A model generated the notes under the pieces. That model worked only from the letters and a program-made list of their open reading frames with translations, was not told where the DNA came from and made no database searches. DNA of 64,000 nt. Origin: Lepidodermella squamata (Eukaryota > Animalia > Gastrotricha). Made by a program: the position numbers and the translations under genes. This document shows, piece by piece, positions 13,724-55,722 of this stretch. How positions within the stretch are numbered: position 1 is the first letter of the stretch; every line of letters starts with the position of its first letter. The DNA lies in the NCBI GenBank assembly GCA_047495785.1, contig JBLDXI010000019.1:1550001-1614000 (forward strand). Reading direction: 5' to 3'.

Positions 13724-15718
13724 TCAGTCTTTTGAAAGGATCGAAGACAATCTTTGTACAGACTGTCCGATCATTGGCAGCATTAATTTGTGTAGCAGCG
13801 TTTCGTCCCCAAAGCGGATGCGCGCGATGTCCTTGAGCTTTTTCAACCAGAAGCGAGCTTTCTCGTAATCCTTCTGCGACAGGTGAAGGTCAGCGAGTTT
13901 CAGCGCAGCGGCTTGAGCCTCGAGCATCCAGCCAAGCTCGACACGTCGTTGGAAAACCTCCTCTGTAGTAGCAATGGCTTCCTTAATGTCTTTGATTTCG
14001 CAATCTACGCACAACAGCGCTTTCATCACCATTTCAGCGAATGGAACGTCGATGGTCGTTTGCTTCCGCAGCTTTTTGATTGCGTTTGACTGCTTCTTCT
14101 CCAGGAAGAAGCTTCCGAAATGCGACTTCTTGCCATCTGATCCCTCGATCTTACGGTGAATGCAGCAAGCTAGCTTCCGAATGACAGGCGTTCCTGACTC
14201 TTCGAGGGCACAAAGCCTGCAATTGCACTTTGTCATACGGCGATACCGCAATAGTCGCTGTTCGTAGGGGAGTGTTACTACCGGGCGAAACTGGAGAACC
14301 AGCTCCTCTCCCTCCCAAACGTCGCGGGTTGTCCGAATCATGAAAAAGTCGCCGATTATGAGATGATCACAATTACTGTCGACACAAGCCAAACGGAAAA
14401 ATGAGGGCAAAGCCCAAAACGCTGTCATGTAAGCCTGTTGCTCTGAAGGCAGTGTCGCAACCCGCACCAGGTTCAACTTGTAAATATCGTATATCTTTTT
14501 GATTAAATACAAATCCTCGTACTTGGGCTCTTCGAAGTTGATTACTACACCCTTTTCGTCCGCGCGGTAGAGCTCATGCATATAATTCGGTAATTTAGGA
14601 TCGATTGTCACGTGATGAGCGATCTTTTCCGAAACGACCCGTTGCCAGTCCCATTCTTCCTCAGGTTGCAGGTAGACAACCGCTTTAGATGCGCAAATTA
14701 GAGTGCCAGCCGGAATTTTACACCGAGAAAAAACTGTCATGCCCGAATTTGCGTCACGCTTTCGTAGCTCAGCGAGCTCCGTGTTGAAAAATTCACCATG
14801 GTCCAAGATTGGTGACTTGATCGACTCTTCCCACATTCCTAGAATGTCATAAGAGCCAAGCTGAGCTTCCTTGTGCCTGGCCTCGGTCTTCGCTTTCAGC
14901 TCTCCAATTTTCTTTACGAAATCTTCTTCTTTGAATGTCAGACATTTGTCACTGTTGATGACAGCTAGACACGAGTCATATTCCCGCAAGTGGTACAGCG
15001 CCTGAGCTTCATGTAACCACAAGTCGGGTATCAACGGATTGAGCCTCAACCCCTCCTCAGCATCTGCAAGTGCTTGTCTCGGCAAACTTAATGAAAGGAG
15101 AATAGAGGCTCGATTCGCAAAGCTCATTGGGTCGAGGGGATCTTCCTTGATAGCCGAGTCGTACCATTCCAAAGCATCTTCGAGCTCTTGATTTTTAAAA
15201 TGGCGATACGCCCTGCTCTTCATGGTCTCGGATAGTTGACTGTTCCGCGTTGCAATTGGCTCGATGCGTGCATGCCAGCGTATTCCTTTCAGCATCGAAT
15301 GGCTTGGGTCGAGAACAATTACGTCGTCCTCGTGCTCGACTTGCAGGACCATTTTGAAATCTGCATCAACTGTTAAATAAGGATTTCTGACCGCAATAAT
15401 TGTGCCAGCACGTAGGTCGATGTCGTTATCCGTTATGACATAGAGACTGATGGCTTTATCGCCCTCTGGATCGTCGAGGAGACATTGCAAAACGCTTTTG
15501 CCGCACGCATTTTTCCGATTAATTGTCGGAGCGATGATTCGAGCGAGTAAAAATTTACCAGCGTGAACTGTCCCAGAACCAATCCGAAGTAATTGGTCAA
15601 TTGTGAGGTTGTTTTGCGGTAGCAAAAACGACAGAGGATTGAATCGTTCAACTTTAAGTTGGTCCAGATGGTTCTTGAGCATGACTTCTCGACGGTACTT
15701 CAACAAAAAATCCGCCAT
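13724..15718 (-). CDS. Intronless TPR + SET-domain protein (degenerate SET motifs), paralog 1
   Basis: TPRs (ALEWYDSAI..FANRASILL); SET-like TVFSRCKIPAGTLI..SKA and FWALPSFFRLAC..IIGDFFMIRTTRDVWEGEEL; post-SET CNCRLC. First ATG at 15718. Confidence 0.85.
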   Translation of the reverse strand: MADFLLKYRREVMLKNHLDQLKVERFNPLSFLLPQNNLTIDQLLRIGSGTVHAGKFLLARIIAPTINRKNACGKSVLQCLLDDPEGDKAISLYVITDNDIDLRAGTIIAVRNPYLTVDADFKMVLQVEHEDDVIVLDPSHSMLKGIRWHARIEPIATRNSQLSETMKSRAYRHFKNQELEDALEWYDSAIKEDPLDPMSFANRASILLSLSLPRQALADAEEGLRLNPLIPDLWLHEAQALYHLREYDSCLAVINSDKCLTFKEEDFVKKIGELKAKTEARHKEAQLGSYDILGMWEESIKSPILDHGEFFNTELAELRKRDANSGMTVFSRCKIPAGTLICASKAVVYLQPEEEWDWQRVVSEKIAHHVTIDPKLPNYMHELYRADEKGVVINFEEPKYEDLYLIKKIYDIYKLNLVRVATLPSEQQAYMTAFWALPSFFRLACVDSNCDHLIIGDFFMIRTTRDVWEGEELVLQFRPVVTLPYEQRLLRYRRMTKCNCRLCALEESGTPVIRKLACCIHRKIEGSDGKKSHFGSFFLEKKQSNAIKKLRKQTTIDVPFAEMVMKALLCVDCEIKDIKEAIATTEEVFQRRVELGWMLEAQAAALKLADLHLSQKDYEKARFWLKKLKDIARIRFGDETLLHKLMLPMIGQSVQRLSSILSKD

Positions 15719-16643
15719 CAAGGTGGATTGGAAAAAGCCGTACGTTGACCGGCCTACAGTGTTTCGCAAAATTGTTGACTATGAAAATACCAAGTCATGA
15801 GCGTTGTTTGAAGTGATACCGGCGGGGTAAATCTATAAAATCGATCAGTGCGCGCGAATTAAATGCTGCGCTGTGCAAAGTTTACATTGTGGCCTTATTG
15901 TGTCTATGATAACAAGGATACGGTATTTGCTCTGCGCTCAGTGGCGTATGGCAGAACAGGCGGCATCGATAAGCGCGGCTCGACATGAAAATCATACCGA
16001 CCTTATATGAATAATTTATTTAGAGAGTATATAAAATCATCACGCGGGAAAAAGCCGAGATCTTTGCGCTAAGAATTACAGGCATTTTTTTGCAGACCGC
16101 AGCTATATCCACAAATAGATGAATATCTTCCACCACACAGGGGGAGAGGGATGGTAAGCACTTTCCTAATCGCTAACACTGATCATCGAATCAAATGATG
16201 AAGATATTACTAGAAGGGTGTGCAACTAACTGCGTTTTAATGCTGTCATAAAATAGTGATGAGAGCCTTTCTGATAGATTTTTTGCCATCAAATTTTTTG
16301 CCGTGGAAATATCTGGCGCTCATCGCCCGACATCCGGACTTCCGTTTAGCAGAAACAATATAATAATATATCTCAACACTTAACACGTATTTCCTAAGGG
16401 AGTGTGCGCGGTGTAATCAGTATTAAAGCCGTATAGTGTCGAGTATCAATGAGCGCCTTCAGATGTGATGGCAGCTGAAATAACCGATTATTTTGCGGCG
16501 AAAATCCCTGCGAAAACAAACTTTTTACTCAAGGCACTCAAAATGACCACCAAATGCTACTAAATTCTACGAAAGCAGTTTACTCAGCAAAAACAAGAAA
16601 TTTATGTACCGAATCTGATTTGATTTATTAAAGTTAGAAATAA

Positions 16644-18695
16644 TCATCTGAAGGAAGCATTAGAGAATCCGCTGCTAAACAAGGTATCCGGAGTTTTTAG
16701 GGAACTAGCTGCCAAAACTAGCTCCGAAGGCGCGAGATGGTTCAAGAGGTTTTCATCGCCGTAGTAGGTTTTAGCCAGAACTTTCAGCTTCATTTTCCAA
16801 CTATTCGTTTCTTCGACACTCCAGCCACCAAGAGGACTGTTTAATGATAGAATTAAGGCTATACCGATGCATTCTAACACCCAACCGAGACCTTCCCATT
16901 GTGTGTAGATCTCCTTATAAATTCGGAGGCCTTCCTTATACTTTCCAGAAGCGATTTTCATCTTCGCGACAATAGCTTGCATTCTGCCAGATAAAGGGTC
17001 CAACGATTGGTCCAGTCTCATTCCTCGCATCTCTACCAGAAATTCGGAGAACTCCACAGCCACATCTGTGGGGTTGGGGGTAGTCAGCTGGGATTTAATC
17101 TCGAATGCATCAAGTTTCGCTGTGAAATACCGCATTTTGTTGCGACAGTTCGATGCCTCGGTAGACTCGAATGAGCAAAGCCTGCATTTACAAGAATAAC
17201 CGCGCTTCTCACGGTAAAAAACTTCGCGATGCTCGAAGCTCAACTTGGTCGGATGGAGTTGCAAGAACAGCTGATCGCCTGGTGCAATATTTTTTGTCGC
17301 TCTCAGAAACATGAAATCACCAATGGTATATCTGTCGCAATTACTGTCGACACAAGAAAAATTGAAAGCGGAAGGTGCTAGCCAAAAGCCGACACTTCTG
17401 TCATCAGTGCCGGAGAAGACGTTATTTTCGAGAATCGCCTTAACTCTTTGGGGGTCTATTGGTGTGAAAGATGCTTGTTCAAGCCGCCTCAATACAGATC
17501 CGGCGTATAACTGAAAGAATTCTCGAGCCGTTGTTAAGTTGCTTTCTAGCTCCTTAACGATTCGAGCCAATAATTCAGAATTACTTTGACTAGGGCTAAA
17601 AACTAGGGCCTTTGAGCAACAGATAAGCGATCCACTTGAGATGGGCTTCAAGGCCACCACGCCTCGCTCGTAACCGGGTAAACTTTTCACTTGGACAGAT
17701 GACTTGTCAAAAAAGTCTGCATGGTCGAGGTATGGCGAACCTTGCGATTCGTTCCACATGCCGAGCAAATCATACTCACCGAGTTTGGCCTCTCTGCTCC
17801 GTCTATTCGCCCGAGCTGTCAGGACAAGAAACTCTCGATCTGCAACATGCCGCGATCCTTCGCTCGACAGAAACGATGAGCACTCTTCGTATCGCTGCAG
17901 CATATAAAGCGCCTTGCCTTTTCTAAAGACTAATTTCTTATTTGTTGGGTCGAACGTCAAGCCTTTTCCCGCATCAGCCAGTGCTTCTTTCGCCTTGCCC
18001 AGCGAAGCGTAAGTTGCTGATCTATTCGAATAGAGCAATGCATTATTCGGCTCCTCAACAATTGCATTGTTGTAGCATTCGAGAGCTTGCTCGAACTTTT
18101 GATTCTTGAAATACTCGTTTCCTCTATCTTTCCATTTCGACGTGGAGAGGTCAGGCTTTTGAGGTAAAGGTGTTTGCAGGGGTGTTCGCCATGGAATGCC
18201 CGAATGGAAGGGATGGCCAGGCTCAAGGATCCCAATATGATTTGGATTGTCGCATAGAAGAGCCTCAGGAGGTGAACCCAAAATCAGCGTATGGAGAGGA
18301 TTCATGATAATGAAAACAGTGCCAGGTTGCAGTAAAGTGCTAGGCAGTGGCACCTTGCTTATCAAGCAGAGCGGTAGTGCATAAATTCCAGCAGGATCGT
18401 CGACAACAAGCCAGTTTAAAACTCCAAACGTTTTATCGTTCACCGGTGGCACAAGAGACCTTGCTAATAAATACTTTCCCATATGAATAAAATCAGGACC
18501 TTCTCGCAGAATTTTGTCGATGGTTATCAAATTTCGGGGATCGAGTGAAACTGGAGGCAGGTTTGAGTTCATGGCGATGTAAGGATATGGCGCCGAGCTT
18601 CCATTGATGAAGGCAACAGGTTGTTGAGCCATTCTCAGATTGTGCTGTTTTATCACAGCATCACGCTGGAAAAGTCGAAGTTCAGCCGAGTTCAT
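16644..18695 (-). CDS. Intronless TPR + SET-domain protein, paralog 2
   Basis: KDRGNEYFKNQKFEQALECY..LYSNRSA TPRs; RGVVALKPISSGSLI; GFWLAPSAFNFSC..IGDFMFLRATKNIAPGDQL; CKCRLC. Confidence 0.88.
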   Translation of the reverse strand: MNSAELRLFQRDAVIKQHNLRMAQQPVAFINGSSAPYPYIAMNSNLPPVSLDPRNLITIDKILREGPDFIHMGKYLLARSLVPPVNDKTFGVLNWLVVDDPAGIYALPLCLISKVPLPSTLLQPGTVFIIMNPLHTLILGSPPEALLCDNPNHIGILEPGHPFHSGIPWRTPLQTPLPQKPDLSTSKWKDRGNEYFKNQKFEQALECYNNAIVEEPNNALLYSNRSATYASLGKAKEALADAGKGLTFDPTNKKLVFRKGKALYMLQRYEECSSFLSSEGSRHVADREFLVLTARANRRSREAKLGEYDLLGMWNESQGSPYLDHADFFDKSSVQVKSLPGYERGVVALKPISSGSLICCSKALVFSPSQSNSELLARIVKELESNLTTAREFFQLYAGSVLRRLEQASFTPIDPQRVKAILENNVFSGTDDRSVGFWLAPSAFNFSCVDSNCDRYTIGDFMFLRATKNIAPGDQLFLQLHPTKLSFEHREVFYREKRGYSCKCRLCSFESTEASNCRNKMRYFTAKLDAFEIKSQLTTPNPTDVAVEFSEFLVEMRGMRLDQSLDPLSGRMQAIVAKMKIASGKYKEGLRIYKEIYTQWEGLGWVLECIGIALILSLNSPLGGWSVEETNSWKMKLKVLAKTYYGDENLLNHLAPSELVLAASSLKTPDTLFSSGFSNASFR

Positions 18696-19074: not shown

Positions 19075-19177
19075 GACGAGGTTATGGTTTTGTCAATCTT
19101 TGGTGCTAATGTAGCCGGAGAGTATGGCGAACTTCGGCTACGTTGGCAACAAAGACCAACGATGAACCCTTCTCGTT
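19075..19177 (+). ncRNA. Candidate pre-miRNA hairpin whose 5' arm starts with a miR-9-type seed
   Basis: 24-bp upper stem (19097-19120 with 19132-19155) with 1 mismatch and 3 G.U pairs that form only on the + strand; 11-nt loop; extra basal pairing. The 5' arm begins UCUUUGGU. Confidence 0.45.
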
Positions 19178-19366
19178 ATCAAGGAAGATGAAAAATGCAA
19201 AATGCCAGAATGAGCGCAATTCACGGCCTTATCAACTTGACGGATGATTCATCTTAAACAATGACGCAATTATTCATTTCCAAGTGAGACTGCGCATTAA
19301 TGGTGAAAGCGATGATTCACAACTTGCTGTTTATTTATCATACATACAAATGAAAGCTTACGATTT

Positions 19367-20525
19367 TCACCGTGGTATCAAAACAGCGATAGCTGTTATC
19401 ATGCAAGACGAAATGAACAAAAGCACTGAGTAGAAAGGGCATAAAGAGGAACACAGTTTTTTGCGTTGAGCGTCCCATATATCCAGCAAATTATTTGCTA
19501 CCGGTGGCAGTTGATCGCTTACTTTCTCCTCAACAGGAGTCAACATTTGTCTCTGATGACTGTAAACTTTGCGCTTTATCAACCCGCCTCCCAATAGTTT
19601 CAAGTTGCCAAGTAGGATAGGAACAGATATAGGAGAGGAACCTTGTGACTGAGCTTTCCTTCTCAGCCCAAGAAGTAGCAATGTCTTCCTGCTTTCAGCG
19701 ACATTACTCAGCCAAGGCCAATCAAAGTTTGAATCGTAAAAATACCAAATTGCAGCGGCTTTACGAGCATCCTCTGCACAATCACCAAAGCCGATGGGAC
19801 ATCCACTTGAATGGTCAAACACAATGAACACAGTTCTATTTTCGTCTATGACGAGAGATTGCGCCTCGATCGAAGAGTCACTTGATATGCTTCCGGGATC
19901 CAAAAGATAAGAGCTCGTTTCGTTCATTTTAAGCAGCGTATCTCGGAATGGCTGCGAGACCAGCAAGAATTTCTCTATACTTTTCCCCAAGTCTAGATAA
20001 ATCGCATAGACCAAAGCCTTGTAGACAATACTTAAGGACTGGGGAACATTTAGGACCTCTACGCAGTTTGATAAAGAAGAGTGGCGATATGATGGCACGT
20101 AAAAGCAACCCATTTTGCGTTTATCAGGGAAGCTTTCGTAGAACGTTTCCAATCGGCTCACTTTTTTGCGGCTAGCTACGTCCATTTTCACGAGACGGTG
20201 AATTTTTTGCCTAAATGAAAAAGAGTACATGCATTTTGGGTTTTAATAAACTTGAGAAATCCTACGCAATAAGTAGAGAAGCTATGAACTCAGGGCTTGT
20301 AGAAACGATAGCTAATCTCTCGCTCAAGCTGTTGGTCCGAATTAGGTCGTCGACAACTATTTTGAGTAGTTGATCGCCAACTTGAGCCCATAGTTTGTGA
20401 TTTCTTGCATTCGTATCAAGTGCCTGTTCGGAATAACGATGCTACAAAACGAGAACTACTTCAAGTGGCCATTGGCTAACCAATTTTAACAGCTTCTTGT
20501 TGGCAATTTCGTACGAGAACAGCAT
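19367..20525 (-). CDS. Degenerate (likely catalytically dead) RNase III + dsRBD-like protein with C-terminal hydrophobic helix (copy A); 5' end uncertain
   Basis: Spliced reading LFSYEIANKKLLKL|ALDTNARNHKLWAQVGDQLLKIV..LIA|QKIH..VPQSLSIVYKALVYAIYLDLG..GFGDCAEDARKAAAI..WPW, homologous to copies B and C. Ends in SVLLFISSCMITAIAVLI. Confidence 0.75.
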
Positions 20526-20886
20526 GGAAGCTCGAGAGTTCACAAAACTTGCTGTAACTTGCCTTGTTTAAGATTAGAGCGGCAAGGAATGGGATATGAG
20601 CTTCTTGCTGAGTAGACAGTTTTCTGCGAAACGATCGTTTTTACATGGTTGGCTCTGCTGAGTGCACCAAAATCGATTGTCTAACGTGCTCACCTGCGGC
20701 ACACGCTGTTAAATTACATCGATCGATCGATGATTTATCAATCATGCATGGCGAAGGTTGGCAACTAAATCTAACGAAGCATCGTAAAAGTAGAACTTTT
20801 CCTTTATTACTTATCGAACTCTTAGGCAAATCAAGAAATCTCTTGGATTATACGCAAATTTGTTCAGAAGCAACTGATAGGAGACG

Positions 20887-21053
20887 GATTAAGATTTCTC
20901 AAGGCTGAATCGGCTTGAATGCTCGCCAAACATATCCGACAGGGGAAACACGAGGGAACATTATTATATCTCACAATCCCGTTGTAGTTTGAACTCTTAG
21001 ATGTTTGGCGAAAATTCAAGCTCAAGCCGATTCAGCCTTGATAAAAGTTAATC
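20887..21053. repeat. Inverted repeat/foldback in the predicted 3' UTR of RNase III copy B
   Basis: Perfect 20-bp core TCAAGGCTGAATCGGCTTGA (20899-20918) pairs with 21022-21041; arms extend imperfectly to ~47-53 bp. Confidence 0.85.
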
Positions 21054-21078
21054 ATCAAAAGTCTGAAGCGATCCTCAA

Positions 21079-21928
21079 TCACCCAGACTTCGAAATGCGC
21101 CAAGGCCACTTCATAATGCTGGACATTTTCAGGGCTGATATCGACGCAGCCTTTTTAGCCAAATCTATATTTCGGCCCCGTCCGATTTCCTCGTCTCCGT
21201 AAAATGCCGAAAAGTCAGCTGTACCCACTTGCTGAATCTCCAAACTCTGCGGGAAAGTGCTGTTCGATTTTTCGTTCATCAGGGCGAAGGGGTCACGAAT
21301 ATTTGTGGCCTGTAGGTAAGCTAGAAGTCAATATTAGAAAAATACCACTCCTAGTTATCATATAGCTTACCGATAATAGGTGTGAATATCGGTACAAGAA
21401 TCGACTCTAGTTTTGCCACATGACTGCCGCAGTCAAGGTAAATCGCGTATACCAAAGCCTCGAAGACGTCACCAAGTGTTTTCGGAATGAACAAAACTTC
21501 ACAGCAATTTTTCGAAACCCGGTAGCATGGCAGGTAGAAAGCTTTACTGAACTTTCTTCTGTCCTTCGATAAACTTTGATAGTATTTCTTGAGGCGAGCT
21601 ATCTCGCCATTCAGCTGAACATCCGCTGAAACATGACTGGCGATTCCCATGCTGTGTAAAGAATATGAGATAGAAGTTCAGGGTTTACAGTTTTGACCGG
21701 ATCATACGCAATTATCATCGATCCGTACAAGTTGTTGCTCTCGGCAATCTGTTTGATATGATTTGAGGCTTTCAGCTTGGAAATAAGTTTGCTGATAATT
21801 TGCTTTAAATAGATATCGCCTTGCAGAGCCCAATTCACATGCTCCGAGTATGACTTGTTAAGAGCTTGAAGCAACAGATGAGGCGACTTGAAAGTATAGC
21901 CGAACTCTTTCTTAACTATGAGTTCCAT
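21079..21928 (-). CDS. Stand-alone RNase III + dsRBD protein resembling the Dicer RNase IIIb/dsRBD C-terminus (copy B, 3 exons)
   Basis: FGYTFKSPHLLLQAL..WALQGD; IPKTLGDVFEALVYAIYLDCG; last exon IRDPFALMNE..IGRGRNIDLAKKAASISAL. Own ATG and TATA box. Confidence 0.88.
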
Positions 21929-21993
21929 TTTCGATTAGTGATGATGAGTGGTAGATGGTAGCGAGTGTGAAATTACTTTCCTCGAATATCGCT

Positions 21994-22045
21994 TTTTATA
22001 GAACTTCATTATCAGTGTTTTCTTGTTTTGCTGCAAGATGAGTCA
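21994..22045 (-). promoter_or_regulatory. TATA box and AP-1-type TGAGTCA site upstream of RNase III copy B
   Basis: TATAAAA on the minus strand at 21994-22000, ~66 bp before the ATG; TGAGTCA at 22039-22045. Confidence 0.5.
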
Positions 22046-22612
22046 ACCCCCTATACTCGCAAAGATGAATAAAACTCAACAATGCAATATGAATCACTTA
22101 TAGATATCGCTGTTCCTCCGCTTAAGGTAAACGTAATCCTAAACTAACACTCGCGTCGAATGATCAATGCGAATGAGCAGTCGAACCTGGTTGCTGTACT
22201 AAGCCGCTTCTTGCACACGTCAACAAAAGCGTGAACAAACTCATCCTGTTTATTCCAGTAATGGCCTTTTTCGTATCACTCCGTTTAACAGAAAATCAGA
22301 AACTTTCGCCACAAGGATTTTGTACAGGCCATATTTCTGAAAGTCTAGCAAGCTTCATATAGGTAGTATAATGCGAGATCACCATACTTTACAGCTGAAA
22401 CCGCTTGGCAGGATGAAACTGCAATGTCTTTTCGAACATATTGTTGAGAGGATTATCAGCTCATTCACCCGCGTGAAAACAGAACCGTTAGTCACCATCA
22501 GTCTTTAAAATTAATCGAATAGAATACTTTATTCAATGAAAAATCAAACAGAGACAGGGTGTAGCGTTATATTTGTTGTTTAAAGGACTTGGTGCCCTAA
22601 TATTTTCCGTAT

Positions 22613-22758
22613 TTGGTTCGACTGCGATGTTCGCCGCACAGTAACGATCTTGGTAAAATCATGAAGAAGGGGCGAGGTGAAAACTATTTTTCAACTCATC
22701 CCCTCTTCATGACTTTAGCTTAACCTTTCGCACGCGGCGAATATCGCAGGAGAACCAA
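22613..22758 (-). ncRNA. Ungapped 71-bp imperfect hairpin (hpRNA candidate or old palindromic MITE)
   Basis: By-hand pairing gives 52 Watson-Crick pairs, 8 positions that are G.U on the minus strand versus 2 on the plus strand, 9 other mismatches and a 4-nt loop. Confidence 0.45.
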
Positions 22759-23456
22759 CAGCGAATGATGCGATTTCACTGGCAAGCAAATAATATATAT
22801 ACATCAAAGTTTTCGTAGGAGGAGCGTCGGAGCAAATCAGCGCTTCATCGTAGGTTTAGAAAATGATCCAAACCATTCAGCCATTGCAAACATGAAAGCT
22901 TCTTGGATTCCTGCTAGTATTGTGACGAAGTACAGCTCCATCCCTGATAATTAATCGTGGCGTCTTCTTCCTTAGATCGAGTTTCTTTGGTGGAGCAGGA
23001 ATTCTTGTTCGCGATTCCAACAGTTAACTGCCACGAGTGACGGTTAACACATATTATTTTCCATGGTGTGCATACGCATATGTTTGATGGTCGTATCTCA
23101 TTAATAATTCGCACACAGAGGTGATAAGTATGTATGATTAATTTTACATTTTGCAAGATGAATCATGCATGGATAATATGGGTATCGCTGTTTCAAAAAT
23201 AGACTCTTTCACGGGATCACGTGTTGAAGGTAAGCTGGAATACATGCGAAGATTACGAGGATAAAAATAAACGCTGTTTATTCTCAATTCATGCCATCAC
23301 TGGGATAAATAGTCGGAATAGAGGGAACTTCGGATGAAATTGCAAAAATATTCAGGAACAAATCAGGAACATCGCAGTCAAACCAAGCCCGAACATCGCA
23401 GCAATTAATCAATGTAACTCAAAATAGATGGATGAAAAGTGAGAATGCCAATTCAT

Positions 23457-24311
23457 TTAGCGCCTTATAAGCCAAGGCCACTGCATTATTCCGTTTGTTG
23501 CGAGCACACTGATAGCAGCTGCTTTCCTGGCCAAATCGCTGTTTTTAGCTCTAGCCACCTCTCGTCCGTCGTAAAACGCAGAAAAGCTCGATGGGGTATT
23601 TTGGTTGATTCTGAGAGCATAGTGAAAGCTGTTATTTGTCCTTTCATTAACCATCGCATAAGGGTCTCGAATTCCCCTTTGCATGAGAAAATCTGTTAGG
23701 GAATTAAAGGTAACATTTATAACAAGTGAAATATAAGAATTTGAGCATTGTGGATTTACCAATAACAGGGGCGAAAATCTTCGTAATCATATCTTCGAGG
23801 AGCGACTTGTTTTGACCACAATCCATGTATATGGCGTAAACCAAAGCTTCAAAGACATCGCCCAGAGTTTTCGGGACGAATACAGCTTCGTATAATCCGC
23901 CGTTTAGCAAATAGCATGGGATGAAGAAGGCTTTCCAGTATATCCCAGAACTCTTTAATCTGTTACCGCAATCAACAAGGGTGTTTATGTCAGCCGATAA
24001 TTGAGGATCGTATTTTATGTATCTGCCAAGATCAGCACTGAAAAACACGATTAAAGTACGTTTACAATGAAACATTGAGAGTGGACTTACGAAATCAGGA
24101 TCGATCCAAACAAATCATTGCTCAAAGCTACTTGTCGGATATAGTCCGACGCCCCCTTTTGCCGGACAATCTTTCCGATGATCGAACCGAGAAGGTCATC
24201 GCCTTCCAAAGCCCACTCTGTGTGGCTGCTGTAAGACTTGTCCAGAGCTTGCGTCAGCAGTGCTTGGGACCTGAAACGGTAGCCAAATGTGGTGAATATT
24301 GCAGTTTCCAT
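23457..24311 (-). CDS. Stand-alone RNase III + dsRBD protein (copy C, 3 exons)
   Basis: FGYRFRSQALLTQAL..WALEGDDLL; VPKTLGDVFEALVYAIYMDCG; IRDPYAMVNE..ARAKNSDLARKAAAISVL..WPW. Same intron positions as copy B. Confidence 0.88.
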
Positions 24312-24376
24312 TTTCTCAGAAGAATAGTGAACTCCAAATTCCGCGGAGCGCGCGTTACTGGATAATACCTATGAGT

Positions 24377-24449
24377 ATTTATAGCTGCAGAAGGCCATGA
24401 CTAAACTTGAAAAGCTTATCTTATCTGCGAAAAAAATGAACATGAGTCA
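24377..24449 (-). promoter_or_regulatory. TATA box and TGAGTCA site upstream of RNase III copy C
   Basis: TATAAAT on the minus strand ~66 bp before the ATG (same spacing as copy B); TGAGTCA at 24443-24449. Confidence 0.5.
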
Positions 24450-24847
24450 GATTAATAGCCCAACTTTGAAGCTGCTGATTGTTTTCTCACTTATTCATAT
24501 TGCAATTTAAACATATATTCCATAGCCAAAATCATACAATAGCTCCTTCAGTCGTTATGTGCTGTGCTGCGAATAAACGTTGATATACCTTGACCAAGGT
24601 GACCAGTAGAAAAAGGGGCAAAACTAATATTTTACCTCAGTTTGGGCGGCTGATATCAAAGAGATATTTTTGGTAAACGTAGGCAATCCAGAAATTCGAA
24701 ATGAGTAATGCTTCCGCATTGCAGGATCAAAGTCCGCATGGTCACATGAATAGCCAGTTGCGAGTCGGTGTTTTTTCGCTTTCTGTCGTTTCGTCGTTTT
24801 CTCGCTTCGTCATCTGACTGAAAAAACTGAAAAAGAAAAAAATAATT

Positions 24848-27328: not shown

Positions 27329-28597
27329 TTATTTTTCCGAAAATATTTGAGGTGGGCTGCATTCGCCAAAAAAGGATTTTATATCGTTGAGTTTGGTTAG
27401 TTCATTATTTTCCAGCCATAATCGTTCGCACAATTTCTTCCAGCCAAACTTGAACTCACCGAGCCTATTTAAGTAATGCGTTTTCCCGTCGAGTTCATAC
27501 CGCAGCTGATGGGTATATTGCCAGGAGAAATAGCTTGCCATCTGATTCTGATAACTCCGCTTGGCCAGATCTCGCAGCAGCTCAACCAGATTATCTATCT
27601 CCATACGGGTCGCATCGATGTAAGAACCAGGTGGTAAAATCTCACTATAAGACCCTCGACCAATGATGACAGGTATTAAGCCATGTCTGAAATTGTGGTA
27701 GAGACCCTCGAATGCTATCTCAGTCGCGAAGTCTTGGCAGAAATGATCTTCAATTGCTATGAAATACCTGAAGCGCAAAAAGAACCTCCGAACCAATCTT
27801 TCACTCTTCCAATCTTCCTCAGGGAATCGATGGCCCCAATTCTCGCTGCAGGCACCCCAAGTTTCGACTTTCAGGCCTAGCTTCTGAAGTCTTCCAATGA
27901 ATACCTTTGCTTGTGAGGAAGTCGCGTTGCAGCTTCTAGTGAACCAGATTGCATCGATCGGGCGTTTCGAGAACCCTTTCACGTAGTTTTCGATTTCGCC
28001 TTTCCTCTCGCCTGGGTTTGGCACTTCAGTAAATTTTTCAACGCGACCATATGGGAAGTAAATGTCTGCATGCAAGTGATAACTCATCAACCAATTGAAG
28101 CCTAGCTTGTTAGCCTGATTGAAATCATCTGTCTGTAAACTCAGCATATCCGGACTGTCAATTTGAAAGAAAACGTAGCGCTGCCCTGACTTTCGTTTCG
28201 CTGGCATTTTCTCACTTCGAAAGTCGTTTGCATTGAATACGAGTGCATCTGCCTCATCTAGAAGTGCTCGGTCAGTTGTAATTGTGCAGGGATATTTGTC
28301 GATTTCTCCTGAAGGTTCGTTAAGCTTTGCTGTCTTGAGCAGATCTAGCATTTCAGTCCAATCATGGCCGCGAAATTTCGTCCATAGAAGGACAATCTTT
28401 GGTTTTACGGAACTCTTTGTAGTGGCTGGGAGATGGGTGGGAGCAGTTGTCGCAACACTTGAGGGGGCAGAGTTGAAGCTCGACAGATGAGACTTGATCT
28501 TGGATCCGTTATCGTAAAAGTAGCTGAACACCAGGAAATTCACCGCCGTGAAGAAAGGAACAGTTATAAGAAAAAAACATACTCTCGGTTTGTCCAT
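27329..28597 (-). CDS. Alpha-1,3-fucosyltransferase-like (GT10) protein with degenerate catalytic motif, intronless
   Basis: Type II TM anchor; IVLLWT, CTITTDR..ADALVF, FNWLMSYH..ADIYFPYG; alpha-1,3 motif altered to FRYFIAIEDHFCQDFATEIAF. Confidence 0.88.
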   Translation of the reverse strand: MDKPRVCFFLITVPFFTAVNFLVFSYFYDNGSKIKSHLSSFNSAPSSVATTAPTHLPATTKSSVKPKIVLLWTKFRGHDWTEMLDLLKTAKLNEPSGEIDKYPCTITTDRALLDEADALVFNANDFRSEKMPAKRKSGQRYVFFQIDSPDMLSLQTDDFNQANKLGFNWLMSYHLHADIYFPYGRVEKFTEVPNPGERKGEIENYVKGFSKRPIDAIWFTRSCNATSSQAKVFIGRLQKLGLKVETWGACSENWGHRFPEEDWKSERLVRRFFLRFRYFIAIEDHFCQDFATEIAFEGLYHNFRHGLIPVIIGRGSYSEILPPGSYIDATRMEIDNLVELLRDLAKRSYQNQMASYFSWQYTHQLRYELDGKTHYLNRLGEFKFGWKKLCERLWLENNELTKLNDIKSFFGECSPPQIFSEK

Positions 28598-28829
28598 AAT
28601 ACTGAAATGCACGATGTAAATCACAATAAGGCTCACAGCACATAGATCAATAGACAACCACCAGGTTTTGTCTTATTGCGATACCTTTAAATAATTTACT
28701 GTTATGCACCGGCCACATGACTCTCACAAAAATAATTGAGTAGCTCGAGGTATTTATTTTATTGAAATTCCAAAATCGCGGTTACTCGTCTTTGGTATAA
28801 TAACGAAAAGTTCGAATAGGAAAAATGCT

Positions 28830-30170
28830 TTATCGAGGTATTGATTGTTGAGAATCATAGCACTTGCCGAGTCGAGATCTCAAATCGGAGATAGTATTCA
28901 TTTCGTAATCAGGGGTGGTCCACAACTTCCGGCAGAGGGTCTGCCAGCCAAATTTGAGACCGTAATTTCGTTTGAAGTAATGAGGGTTCAATCTGTAGTC
29001 CATCGTATACGTGAATTGCCATTGGTAGTAACTCTCTAACATATTTCGATTCTCCGGCTTTGATAATTTGAGCAGCAGCTCAGCTAATTCATTCACTTCC
29101 ATTCTAGTTGCATCGATGTAAGAACCGGGAGGTAAAAGTTTGCTGTAGTTGGCAGCGCCGAATAGGATAGGAATCATGCCATGGTTGATATTGTGGTAGT
29201 ATCCCGCAAATGCCTTTTCAGTGGCGTAATCATCACAGAATGAGTTTTCGAATCCGAGGTAAAACTTGTAACGCTGGAAAAACGCAGCAACCTTTGCTTC
29301 GCTAGTCCACTCTGCATCGGGGCGCTTGTAACCGTTTTCGCCGCAGTTACCCCACCGGTCCATTTTAAAGCCAACCTTCTTCAAGTTATCGAAAAATTCG
29401 TCCCGTTTCGAAGCTGAATTGCAGTGGGAGACCATCCAAAAACCATCTCTGGGGCGGACATGGAAGCTGTCGACGAAATGGTTGATTTTATCTGCGACAG
29501 CTTTTCGATCAACCTCAATCATCTCAGACGGACGAATATCGACAGAGCCGTAGGGAAAATAAACGTCTGCACTAGGTCTGTAGTTCATCACCCAATTGAA
29601 GCCTGCATGATCAGCAGCTTGATATGAATCCTCGTTCAAGCCGCTGTTTAATGGCGACTCTAGCCCATACATGACCCAACGCTGCCAGCTGTAACGAGTT
29701 TGCGGAAAATCGACTCCTCTGAAATCACGCGTGTGAAAAATGACTGCCGATGCTTCTTTCAATTTAGATTTATCGCTCGTCATCAAACACTTGTACTGGC
29801 CATTTGCATTGAAGCCATCCGGGTCGTAAATTTGCCCAGAAAATGATATGACTGGTGAATTTTCATTTAGCTCAAGAAATTCTCGCCAGTCTGGGTCGCC
29901 AAAGTATTTCGTCCACAGCAGAATCACCTTCTCCCGCGGATTCGGGTTAGCATGTGGTTCATTTGGCGTATCAGTGGAAGCTCCTTGTAACGCGTTGAAG
30001 ACGAAAGATGTGACATGCAGATGTAGTTTGGTCAGGTCAAACCCGTAATGAACAATGGCAAGATTGATCAACGTGAAAGTCGGCAGCAGGATAAGGAATA
30101 CGCGCGATTTGGTGCATGTCGATGACCATTTCGATGAATTCTCTATGTCATTACGCGGAGAAAGTTTCAT
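28830..30170 (-). CDS. Alpha-1,3-fucosyltransferase (GT10), intronless
   Basis: Type II TM anchor; VILLWT, AVIFH, GLESP, FNWVMNYR, WMVSHC..KR, YKFYLGFENSFCDDYATEK, LLPPGSYID. Confidence 0.93.
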   Translation of the reverse strand: MKLSPRNDIENSSKWSSTCTKSRVFLILLPTFTLINLAIVHYGFDLTKLHLHVTSFVFNALQGASTDTPNEPHANPNPREKVILLWTKYFGDPDWREFLELNENSPVISFSGQIYDPDGFNANGQYKCLMTSDKSKLKEASAVIFHTRDFRGVDFPQTRYSWQRWVMYGLESPLNSGLNEDSYQAADHAGFNWVMNYRPSADVYFPYGSVDIRPSEMIEVDRKAVADKINHFVDSFHVRPRDGFWMVSHCNSASKRDEFFDNLKKVGFKMDRWGNCGENGYKRPDAEWTSEAKVAAFFQRYKFYLGFENSFCDDYATEKAFAGYYHNINHGMIPILFGAANYSKLLPPGSYIDATRMEVNELAELLLKLSKPENRNMLESYYQWQFTYTMDYRLNPHYFKRNYGLKFGWQTLCRKLWTTPDYEMNTISDLRSRLGKCYDSQQSIPR

Positions 30171-52147: not shown

Positions 52148-52357
52148 GTTTTGCGTGCAATGATGGAGATTTTCCGTTTTGCATGGCTTTCGTTGTTTCG
52201 TGCGCCGACCTTCTCACCTCGAAGCGCGGCGATTATCGATTTGACGACCACGCACTACTGCCCCAACACTGGCTAGCTTTTTACCGTTCATGCTGGAAAT
52301 TCGCGCCTTCGTTGTGCGATACATTACATTACATCATAATTATTCTGTTCGTCAAAT

Positions 52358-52569
52358 TTTCTCTATCCGACGATATACAATTTTTCAGGTAAATTATTTA
52401 TTTTGATTTTCCGATCGTTTTCAGCCGTGCATATTGGACTTTGAATTTTCTCACAGCGTTGCTTTGTTCAGAAACATTCTAGCAAATAATAATTTTTCGA
52501 GCTGAGAAAAAATCGGAAAATCAAAATAAATAATTTACATGAAAAAATGTATATCGTCGGATAGGGAAA
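52358..52569. mobile_element. Foldback/MITE-like inverted repeat
   Basis: ~67-bp arms (52358-52424 and 52501-52569) are nearly perfect reverse complements (CTATCCGACGATATACA..ATTATTTATTTTGATTTTCCGAT). Confidence 0.8.
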
Positions 52570-52619
52570 CTTTTCAACGTGGATAAACAAATTTTCAACA
52601 ATGTTTCATAATTTTTTCG

Positions 52620-52921: not shown

Positions 52922-55722
52922 GTATATTCAACTCTCCCCAACGGAAATTACCCGAAGCAACGCACCCAATGCGATTATCCCCGTGCGCGCGCGCCCAACG
53001 CGATAATCCCCAAAATTAATGCGCACCGAGTAAACAATTGAGTAAATAAACTTTATTCAAGCCACAACAACGAAAAGTAAAAGGAAAAGACCAAGCAACA
53101 AAGCCACAACAAATTACGAGTTACAAATAGAAATTTCAACAAATTTTCTAATATTTTTTTTTCTTCAACAATTTTGAGACGTTATCAAGAAATTCAATGA
53201 GCAAATCATTTTTCTTCTTATGCTTCAACGGGTCCCGAGAGGCGGCTAGGTGAACTAAATTTTCGTTAAACGCTTTTTCGACATTAATTAAGGCTTGATT
53301 TTTTAAACACTGGTTCTTCTTCGACTTGCACAACGGCTTGCCCTGTTTTTCGAACTTGGCCATCTTGACAGCTACTTCGGCCTCCTCTTTTTGAATAGAC
53401 TCAATGAAAAACCAGATAGCAGGGTGTTTGCGATGATTAGCGACCACGTTCATGCGGTGATGCCACCCTTCGACGCCGTTGTTTGTTCGAATGCACTGTC
53501 CATGAACATTCCATTCACTGATTGGAAAACGCTTCATCCAGGTGCCGCGGAAATATTTTTCGAAGTCCTTTTCCCTCAGCATAGGTGGCAATTTGGAGAA
53601 GAGCAACTCAGCGGCGGCCTCAACTTCGTCTTCTTTGAGCAGGGCAAGAGCCTGGAAGCGGCGAATCGTGACGTAGACGACGTTAGACACTTGACGGCCG
53701 TCTGATCCCATGATCCGGTTGCCATCGTCGTCGGTCGGCGGCCCCGATTCATACTCAGTCTAAAAGTAACAGGTTAAAATCGAATTGAAGAGGAAGAAAT
53801 TAGCTCACCTTTAGGCCATTTTCGTCGACCCAGGTACGGAGGGCTTTGCAGAAATGAAAAAAGCATCCCACGATCTTGACCAGCTTGCCATTCTTGCCCC
53901 GCAACTTCCGAATTACGGGCAGGAGGCCACTCTCGAAGTCGCACGTCGCCTCCTCGAGCTGCAGCTCTTCGTGCGTCGCGTCGATTGCGTTCATTAGAGT
54001 TTCAAAGACCCGAGTGTAAAGGGCCGAGCTCTTCTCAGACATGAGGACAAATGCCGCCGGAAATGTCGCGCCGTCTCTCATCGTGTGAATGGAGAACATT
54101 TGGTAAAAGATTTTCGGGCTTATCGCGAAAGTGCCGTCGAAAAACCAGCGGCTCGCCCTTGCCAATCGCTGGAATCCACGGCTTGTAGCGAAAACGATGT
54201 AGGACTTGCCGTCCTCACCTTTCTCCAGATGATACAGAAACTTTTCGTTCTTGTCATGCGTTAAGATGAAGGCTTCAATTTTCGCTTGTGTTTCCTCGTC
54301 TAGATCTTTGGCGATGGCTGATTGCAGCAGCTCAAACAAGTCGTCCAACGACGTCGGGTTTTTCGGGTACTTCTTGCCTCGGCGCTTGTACAGCCCAGAG
54401 ACGATCTCGTCGAGGTCCGGGAACGCCTCGCGTACCTCCAAGTCCGAGATCTCGCTTTTCACTTGACGGTAGTGTTGACCGGGAACGACGGCCGGCTGGT
54501 TGGAGATGAGCCACCGAACTTTAGCCATGTTGATTTCAACCTCGACTCCAACTCGGTCTGGTTCGTGGTTGTGCTCTAACAACAAAATTAAATCAAAATC
54601 AAACAATTTTAGTCGAAATATCGAATTACCTCCATGTTTCGGCGCCTCTTCTAGGTTGAACCGGTAACAAGCGCTGTTATGCCCTTCTGGCCACTCGGGA
54701 AGCGGGCTAGTCCACGTACAGTGGCAGTTCAATTCGCCACGGTGGTCGTAGCAGCGGACGTAGACGGCGCCGTTTTTGCGTCGGTCAAACAGGTACCGAT
54801 GGCCGGCGTGACACAAGACTTTGCCATCCTTGGACGACTTGTAGTAAACAGCGTGCTTCTCGGGCTGAAAATCCAACATGGCCTGCATTTGATCAGGGGT
54901 GAGGCTCAAGTTCGTTGCCTGTGGAACTGTTTGCTGCTGAACTGTTTCTTCGAGCTGGCGAACGCGGGCCTTCAGCAGGCGCACGGTGTTCGGCGAGGCG
55001 AAATCGCTTGAGTCCGCTACTTGAGGCGGGTGCTGTTCCGGCACTTCGACGCTGAAGTCGTTTGAAGCCGAGTTGCTCTGATTCTCGAGATCCGGCATGC
55101 TGTCCTCGCTAAGTTGCGGCGAGGCCACGCGCGGCGGTATCGGCGGTTGAGTGGCCACAACGACTGGATTAGCTCTGCTTGCCTTAGCTGTTGAGAACGT
55201 AATCGGATTAAAGACGGGCGGTGGTGTTGACGCGGGTGCCACTCGCTGTGCCGTCTTCTTCTTAGCTTGCGCTTGTCTGACCGGCGGTGGATCGACAGCC
55301 GGTTGCTCAGACACTTTCACCTTGTTTTTTGAACCAGGCGGCCGCCCGGGTTTACGCTTTACAGGTGCTGCTATGCGGATGGTACCATTAGTAAAAAAAA
55401 AACCCAGCTTAAGAAAGTGTGTACCTTCAGCGTTATCAGCCGTAACTTGAGAATCGGTAACGATTGCTTTGCGTTTACCCATCAGAACGTCGAATATCAA
55501 ATATCAAAATGATTGCAGGTTGATGATGAATGCGAATTCCTCGTGCTTTCCTGGCTACTCTACTCTGTGTCATCAGGTGTGGGCGCCTGCCTGCGCGCGC
55601 GAGTTTCCTTGTGTGTGTTCGTGCGCGCGTGTGTGTATTGTTATAATCCACTTGGGGAACGCAACAGCGCGGTGGGGATATGGTGCTATGGGTATTTTCC
55701 GTTGGGGTGAGTTGAATCATTC
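52922..55722 (-). mobile_element. Complete Mutator-like DNA transposon (MULE), 2.8 kb
   Basis: ~40-bp imperfect TIRs (ATTCAACTC[T/A]CCCCAACGGAAA[T/A]TACCC); identical 9-bp TSD AGTAGCGGC at 52913-52921 and 55723-55731; internal transposase. Confidence 0.93.
53148..55482 (-). CDS. MULE transposase with AT-hook and FLYWCH-like zinc finger, 3 introns
   Basis: KPGRPPGSKNK; GHRYLF..YVRC..CHC; WFFDGTF, CDFE, GCFFHFCKA, YFRGTWM..WN, RTNNGVEGWH (DDE triad plus CxxH). Confidence 0.92.

Follow-up and report, generated by a model that had tools for sequence, protein, structure and literature searches.

A tandem cluster of stand-alone RNase III genes of probable Dicer descent in the gastrotrich Lepidodermella squamata, with predicted hairpins after the stop codon

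A 64,000 nucleotide (nt) stretch of the genome of the gastrotrich Lepidodermella squamata (GenBank assembly GCA_047495785.1, contig JBLDXI010000019.1, positions 1,550,001 to 1,614,000; hereafter the window, numbered from its first letter) carries three paralogous genes for small ribonuclease III (RNase III) proteins, here called A, B and C in order of position, in tandem on the minus strand between 19367 and 24383. The first-pass annotation, made from the sequence alone, had described three spliced paralogs resembling the C-terminal end of Dicer; all three lie where it placed them, but only B and C are intact, gene A being a transcribed relic. The models of the three genes were drawn by eye first and then checked against contigs of public reads. 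One public run (X1, 2015) is RNA, its contigs containing GT..AG joints, poly(A) tails and the template-switch oligonucleotide of SMART-type cDNA. A tblastn search across the window found no further RNase III segment.

The coding region of gene C (23457–24311, minus strand; 244 amino acids) comprises exons 24311–24091, 24037–23760 and 23692–23457, as read from a spliced RNA contig and its translation, with introns at 24038–24090 (53 nt) and 23693–23759 (67 nt). Gene B (21079–21928, minus strand; 247 amino acids) has the exons 21928–21708, 21651–21371 and 21320–21079, recovered in a spliced RNA contig of 972 nt, and introns at 21652–21707 (56 nt) and 21321–21370 (50 nt). All four introns were seen spliced in X1 contigs with GT..AG joints; the acceptor of exon 3 of gene B lies 12 nt upstream of the best-looking acceptor site, which adds the residues AYLQ. 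Intron 1 (phase 2) is common to A, B and C according to the RNA joints, in agreement with the shared intron position predicted earlier, and intron 2 (phase 1) is common to B and C only. The two proteins are 46% identical, and synonymous sites between the genes are saturated.

Both intact genes have a promoter of their own on the minus strand. In gene C (24351–24383) the element TATAAATA forms the TATA box at 24376–24383 and the adapter-tagged 5′ end lies at 24351; in gene B (21968–22000) the TATA box is TATAAAAA at 21993–22000 and the 5′ end lies at 21968. In each case the SMART template-switch adapter joins the genome 40 nt upstream of the ATG and 32 nt downstream of the TATA box. An ATG and TATA box for each gene had been proposed before and are confirmed, with a spacing of 72 nt rather than the 66 nt first given. 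The transcripts begin 40 nt before the single-domain ATG and finish after the domain that binds double-stranded RNA (the dsRBD). The 3′ untranslated region (UTR) of gene B occupies 20785–21078 (294 nt, minus strand), with AATAAA at 20803–20808 and a poly(A) site at 20785, and is covered by an RNA contig unbroken over 20785–21320. Contig depth over B and C was 110–190. Because both genes have adapter-tagged 5′ ends below TATA boxes and spliced contigs, and B in addition a poly(A) site, B and C are complete, independent, expressed transcription units and not exons of a long Dicer gene, as had been argued from sequence; the RNA ends exclude, for both genes, transcripts that join these exons to upstream parts of a Dicer.

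Gene A (19367–20441, minus strand) is transcribed and spliced, with RNA contigs over 19316–20156, and its mRNA probably ends near 19316. Its single intron (approximately 20210–20264; joint 20209/20265) corresponds in position and phase (2) to intron 1 of B and C. An in-frame TAG at approximately 20442–20444 interrupts the N-terminal region of homology with B and C, with no ATG following it, and alignment with Dicer RNase IIIb shows other residues (SLSIVYKAL) in place of the catalytic Asp and Glu. The gene is without intron 2, and its reading frame continues for about 110 codons beyond the WPW motif. Gene A is thus clearly a decaying, transcribed copy. Over 19592–19901 two haplotype contigs from a DNA run (X2) differ at 24 of 310 positions, a very high allelic divergence; smaller blocks of variants occur at 23414–23487 and 24334–24395.

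In the B and C proteins (244–247 amino acids) a single RNase III domain is followed by a dsRBD and a conserved WPW tail, which together account for the full length. In alignment they are co-linear with the RNase IIIb domain plus dsRBD of Dicer from the first residue to the last helix, starting at the FGYxF motif of IIIb. Four intact genes of the family are available, B and C together with two genes of a second species found in metagenome assemblies, and across them the motifs GD, GDVFEAL and WPW are invariant, WPW standing at the C-terminus and being absent from Dicers. All four retain the Asp of GD as well as the Asp and Glu of GDVFEAL. The signature Glu (E41 of Escherichia coli RNase III, E1705 of human Dicer, located by the GD anchor) is Ala in all five copies, gene A included; the alignment with Dicer IIIb agrees here with the three of four catalytic carboxylates counted in B and C by the first-pass annotation. 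The E. coli E41A protein has weak activity and low binding of double-stranded RNA (dsRNA) (Table 1 in PMC8708148), and E1705 is a loss-of-function hotspot of human Dicer. Because E. coli E41A is weak, putative cutting by B and C is plausible but probably of reduced efficiency.

The same alanine could mean that the proteins have kept the fold and dsRNA binding and have given up cutting, acting as modulators that sequester dsRNA or hairpins, or that pair with an RNase III domain of full Dicer and so tune small RNAs. Loss of the metal-binding Glu in five of five copies from two species would fit such a role, as would the catalytic weakness of E41A (PMC8708148) and the pairing of isolated Dicer domains in solved structures (2eb1). 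It is one of the two main alternatives to the favoured reading, the other being that the hairpins are unrelated foldback insertions. We nevertheless regard it as unlikely, since the other three carboxylates are strictly kept in the intact copies and were rapidly lost in the decayed gene A, which argues that metal binding still matters, and since E41A is a weak enzyme and not a dead one.

Pfam scans covered single exons of B and C, and in them the RNase III models reached at best 19.9 bits (B exon 2) against a cut-off of 27; the tested pieces of the family gave weak matches to PF20932 (E = 0.16) and dsrm (E = 0.018), and PF22892 was not matched by the B and C exons or by the metagenomic relative P0001. 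A structure model was made for P0001 alone, which comprises the dsRBD and one half of the RNase III domain, and had a predicted local distance difference test (pLDDT) score of 59; its C-terminal part follows the order alpha-beta-beta-beta-alpha at pLDDT 73–84. The top matches of this weak model were Dicer IIIb plus dsRBD structures, at scores that are not significant (Foldseek, 3c4b, E = 0.03; VIA, 8dfv, Z = 5.8 over 137 residues). An ESM Atlas feature search returned generic RNase III plus dsRBD neighbours only, and an Atlas structure search with so weak a model is meaningless.

Exon 2 of gene B alone, compared with solved structures, matched human Dicer IIIb (2eb1) at E = 5.6e-5 and bacterial RNase III at about 1. 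A structure-database profile built from exons 2 and 3 of family members only matched the Dicer structures of mouse and human (IIIb plus dsRBD) with E-values from 5e-11 to 1e-9, with the alignment running through the dsRBD of 3c4b, and then plant DCL1 (6e-8), fly Dicer-2 (1e-7), fly Dicer-1 (1e-6) and bacterial RNase III (4e-4). With this profile no Drosha or mL44 chain was matched among the solved structures up to E = 10, so that a placement in mL44, raised at the outset as an alternative, finds no match. An earlier profile that included Dicer rows (A2) had given very strong Dicer matches; it was dropped as circular and the search rerun with family members only. An exon-1 profile matched bacterial RNase III best, at E = 0.002, along the FGYxF...QAL...GD segment; because exon 1 also matches RNase III, both halves of the domain are, on profile comparison, recognisably RNase III.

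The proximity to Dicer was also seen in a far larger collection. When the exon-2 pieces of the three genes were made into a profile and searched exhaustively with HMMER against 1.84 billion representative proteins, 21 matches had E ≤ 0.001. The only close one was the true relative P0001 (E = 1.7e-12); the others inspected among those listed were, with the exception of one low-complexity repeat protein, fragments or C-terminal parts of animal Dicers that cover RNase IIIb. In a maximum-likelihood tree of 14 sequences (four of the family, five Dicer IIIb, three Dicer IIIa and two bacterial) the family (support 100/100) was nested, on a long stem, within animal Dicer IIIb (96/97), apart from IIIa and the bacterial sequences. 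The family-only profile, the database matches and the tree agree with the earlier view that the proteins are closer to the Dicer C-terminus than to bacterial RNase III, and the phylogeny that had been suggested, albeit on a small sample, puts them inside animal Dicer IIIb.

Further evidence of ancestry comes from gene structure. Intron 2 of B and C is in phase 1 and follows a residue that aligns without gaps with I1842 of human Dicer. In human DICER1 the last base of exon 25 is c.5527, which opens codon 1843 (PMC10541835); in position and phase the intron of B and C thus equals intron 25 of that gene. In the Dicer gene of a spider (assembly GCA_000611955.2), too, the homologous PAL|K is followed by a phase-1 intron. 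Neither the human nor the spider gene has an intron matching intron 1 of the family. Judged by position and phase, intron 2 is an old Dicer intron kept in the family. A partial duplication of a Dicer gene at the DNA level is therefore favoured, and retroposition or transfer from a virus or bacterium disfavoured; with conserved family peptides, no relative was found in the JGI metagenome or IMG/VR viral contigs, so a viral or bacterial donor is without support. Together, the profile and database matches, the small tree and the shared intron point to descent of the family from the RNase IIIb domain plus dsRBD of Dicer. Of the Dicer-derived nuclease family originally proposed, the Dicer IIIb-type sequence and the separate genes hold, strengthened by the shared intron, although the intact genes number two and not three.

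As relatives of the family, the searches found only a tandem pair of genes whose proteins share about 33% identity with B and C; they lie on contigs L001–L003 of three metagenome assemblies in the European Nucleotide Archive (ENA), all from one species. Both have intron 1 and lack intron 2. The 8.6 kb contig carries seven other genes, and because the neighbours include Kringle, protein kinase and ubiquitin-like repeat genes, the contig is taken to come from an animal, one that is uncultured. Word-indexed searches of approximately 5.8 billion protein clusters with the gene A open reading frame (ORF), P0001 and the family profile returned only two metagenomic proteins; the proteins of the L. squamata genome are themselves absent from this collection. 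The Pfam family DUF7821 (PF25134, cut-off 23) matches P0001 at 27.8 bits (profile positions 94–172 of 177) and the relative P0023 at 23.7 bits; B exon 2 reaches 13.4 bits, and C and the Dicers give no match. We found no mention of DUF7821 in the literature.

The ratio of non-synonymous to synonymous substitution rates (dN/dS) was 0.18–0.20 both between the two metagenomic paralogs and between the strains L001–L003. These substitution rates show the family to be under purifying selection in the second species; a ratio near 1, named by the first-pass annotation as the mark of pseudogene debris, is not seen among these copies, and B and C are expressed. That B and C might nonetheless be non-functional remains of a partial Dicer duplication is suggested by the clear decay of gene A and by the lack of the family in almost all sequenced animals, but this explanation is largely refuted and we give it almost no weight: the reading frames of B and C are intact, both genes are precisely spliced and expressed from defined promoters, their motifs are kept although the paralogs are old (46% identity, synonymous saturation), and dN/dS is approximately 0.19 in the relative. 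In the metagenomic contigs (L001, 1842–3711 and 6425–8056; also in L002 and L003) the two RNase III-like genes are interleaved with five genes that consist of ubiquitin-like domains in tandem. A stretch of copy 2 in L002 and L003 (approximately residues 90–140) is identical to copy 1, and copy 2 of L001 differs there, which suggests gene conversion between the tandem paralogs.

Immediately behind the coding region of gene B, the 3′ UTR is predicted to fold into a long, imperfect hairpin (20887–21053, minus strand; inverted repeats I2 and I4) that begins 26 nt after the stop codon. Its folding energy is −69.4 kcal/mol (z = −7.35; none of 200 shuffles as good), it is single-copy in the window, and it lies within the mRNA sequenced in an X1 contig. 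On the metagenomic contig the two strongest inverted repeats begin 30 and 59 nt after the stop codons of the family genes (z = −12.3 and −9.7); their stems are near-perfect, single-copy in the sequence seen and identical in L001–L003, and such a hairpin follows the stop codon in none of the seven other genes on the contig. A hairpin 26–59 nt after the stop codon is therefore present in three of the four intact genes, in two distant species, with its position kept and its sequence not. Within the window, two of the three strongest local inverted repeats lie in the 5 kb cluster. Because the position recurs in this way, a functional link between post-stop hairpin and gene family is suggested.

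The hairpins could instead be unrelated to the proteins, either as foldback insertions resembling miniature inverted-repeat transposable elements (MITEs) or as generic 3′-end elements, the family then being an ordinary diverged RNase III paralog with a housekeeping substrate. No alignable sequence is shared among the hairpins, the A and C mRNAs are without one, and the near-perfect stems of the relative could be young. Coincidence of this kind has to accommodate, however, the finding that three of the four intact genes, from two species with approximately 33% protein identity, have a hairpin that begins 26–59 nt past the stop, its absence from all seven other genes of the metagenomic contig, and the single-copy state of each hairpin in the available sequence, and we rate it as rather unlikely while still taking it seriously. 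No Rfam family reached its gathering score in the window, matches near the hairpins being at chance level only, and ARAGORN found no transfer RNA in the window. A rotifer spliced-leader sequence did not occur in the window either, a result that carries no weight in either direction.

Overall we favour, as reasonably probable, the reading that these are Dicer-derived single-domain RNase III genes whose products putatively pair and bind or cut the hairpin behind their own stop codons. On the evidence of sequence and gene structure, the family is lineage-restricted and arose by partial duplication of the 3′ end of an animal Dicer gene, comprising the RNase IIIb exons and the dsRBD exons; the duplicate then acquired a TATA promoter and, where the IIIb domain begins, a start codon, and its product has about 245 amino acids and a family-specific WPW C-terminus. 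Because every single-domain RNase III must pair, this product would be expected to form a dsRNA-processing centre with itself, with a paralog or possibly with a Dicer domain. The paired protein would bind long stems and probably cut them with lower efficiency, the post-stop hairpin of B and of both metagenomic copies being the likeliest substrate. Cutting of its own hairpin could give negative feedback on the mRNA, small RNAs from the 3′ UTR, or both. In its complete form, as a module of enzyme and substrate in which the RNase III cuts the hairpin in its own 3′ UTR, limits its own level and releases small RNAs, the proposal is tentative and, on the sequence evidence, quite unlikely.

Several observations weigh against the favoured interpretation. 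The proximal 3′ UTR of gene C forms no hairpin (z = −0.57), and the hairpin nearest to gene A lies beyond the probable poly(A) site of its mRNA. The second long hairpin of the cluster (22613–22758), near gene C, belongs to another transcript, and its tie to the family is uncertain. The lack of alignable sequence leaves room for independent foldback insertions, and uncleaved full-length B mRNA is present in the RNA contigs. On the protein side, the signature Glu is Ala, to be read beside the weak E. coli E41A (PMC8708148) and the human E1705 hotspot; on the pieces tested, no Pfam model for RNase III or dsRBD reaches its threshold; and the P0001 structure model is poor. The tree is small, contains no Drosha, fungal, plant or viral RNase III and gives the family a long stem branch.

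Animal Dicer is the closest known relative of the family, in its IIIb plus dsRBD part, by sequence, tree and structure (mouse 3c4b; human 2eb1 and 5zak), and its phase-1 intron at the IIIb/dsRBD border, present in human and spider, is shared with B and C. The differences are nonetheless large: against approximately 1,900 amino acids in Dicer, the family proteins have about 245, without helicase, PAZ, platform and RNase IIIa, and are expressed from promoters of their own; the signature Glu is exchanged for Ala, the IIIb insert is shorter and the WPW tail is added. In layout, a single RNase III domain followed by a dsRBD, the family equals the class 1 enzymes (bacterial Rnc, yeast Rnt1, budding-yeast Dcr1 and plant RTL1), in which a dimer should form the active centre, and by analogy the same would be expected here; unlike these enzymes, from which it is not descended, it lacks the catalytic Glu of ERLEFLGD, which is replaced by Ala.

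Feedback through a stem in an RNase III message has precedents. E. coli rnc is described as regulating itself by cleavage of a stem in its own mRNA (Bardwell 1989, as cited in PMC8708148). That stem is in the 5′ leader, whereas the hairpin of the family is in the 3′ UTR. In animals, Drosha, which has two RNase III domains, cuts hairpins in the DGCR8 mRNA (in the 5′ UTR and the coding part) and so provides homeostatic control. Drosha–DGCR8 is thus an animal RNase III system with a cuttable hairpin in its own message, as in the circuit proposed here, although there the hairpin is in the mRNA of the partner, and no similarity of the family to Drosha was found with the family-only profile.

The nearest counterpart as a free polypeptide is a C-terminal fragment of Caenorhabditis elegans DCR-1 (tDCR-1), consisting of RNase IIIb and dsRBD and produced by a caspase, which Nakagawa and colleagues reportedly found in 2010 to nick chromosomal DNA in apoptosis. 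Its domain content is nearly the same; it is made by proteolysis, not from a separate gene, and acts on DNA. Equality in domain content makes it conceivable that B and C are DNA nucleases as well, but nothing in the locus points to cell death and the 3′ UTR hairpins point to RNA, so that we consider this very improbable.

The RNase III-type proteins of animals, as usually taught, are Drosha, Dicer and the inactive mL44, and in the literature on Dicer evolution and on animals we found no description of stand-alone genes for RNase IIIb plus dsRBD. Surveys of RNA interference (RNAi) genes usually demand PAZ and Dicer-dimer domains, as one in rotifers did (PMC7943196), so that such families are invisible to them. 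The locus shows that a portion of Dicer can turn into a separate gene of bacterial-style layout that is expressed and under selection. With exact transcript ends and splice sites known, the B and C proteins can be made, and the post-stop hairpin is a concrete first candidate substrate. If the hairpin is cut, the family would show RNase III feedback in a compact natural form and might be a new source of small RNAs; a self-cutting circuit long kept in this sparsely sampled animal lineage would then add to Drosha and Dicer a pathway of small-RNA biogenesis not yet described.

Between genes B and C, the second long hairpin (22613–22758, 146 nt, minus strand; inverted repeat I1, 71-nt arms) has a predicted fold of −79.5 kcal/mol (z = −9.58) and sits in the 3′ part of a separate minus-strand transcript at approximately 22511–23083, with AATAAA at 22528–22533 and a poly(A) site at 22511. 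The contigs of this transcript are the deepest of the region (approximately 600–1240, compared with 110–190 for B and C), and it contains only a 34-codon ORF at 22941–22837; the transcript may be the precursor of a hairpin RNA or may encode a microprotein. RNA contigs of the plus strand carry poly(A) at 22618–22621, exactly at the base of the hairpin and convergent with the minus-strand poly(A) at 22511, and could represent an antisense transcript that ends, or is cut, there. Just downstream of gene C, a 20-nt element (23367–23386, minus strand; I5) is complementary at 19 of 20 positions to the 3′ arm of this hairpin (E = 0.002 within the window), and 23367–23401, approximately 700 nt from the hairpin, is a short tandem repeat of two units of CTGCGATGTTC. 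A smaller hairpin than the long ones of the cluster, at 19093–19159 (z = −4.6), lies approximately 160 nt past the position at which the gene A mRNA is probably polyadenylated and has Rfam mir-548 matches at chance level on both strands.

The neighbours of the cluster in the window are ordinary animal genes, including SET-TPR pairs, a Cys-loop channel, an ankyrin gene, fucosyltransferases, discoidin-domain proteins, a kinase and a MULE transposase. At 13724–15769 and 16644–18695 (minus strand) lie two paralogs in tandem, poor in introns and approximately 680 amino acids long, with TPR repeats and a SET domain, and two family-10 fucosyltransferase genes lie in tandem at 27329–28657 and 28830–30170 (minus strand). 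The strongest inverted repeat of the window (52354–52573; 67-nt arms, 91% complementary) is situated 1.2 kb from an ORF for a MULE transposase with a FLYWCH zinc finger (53800–55500).

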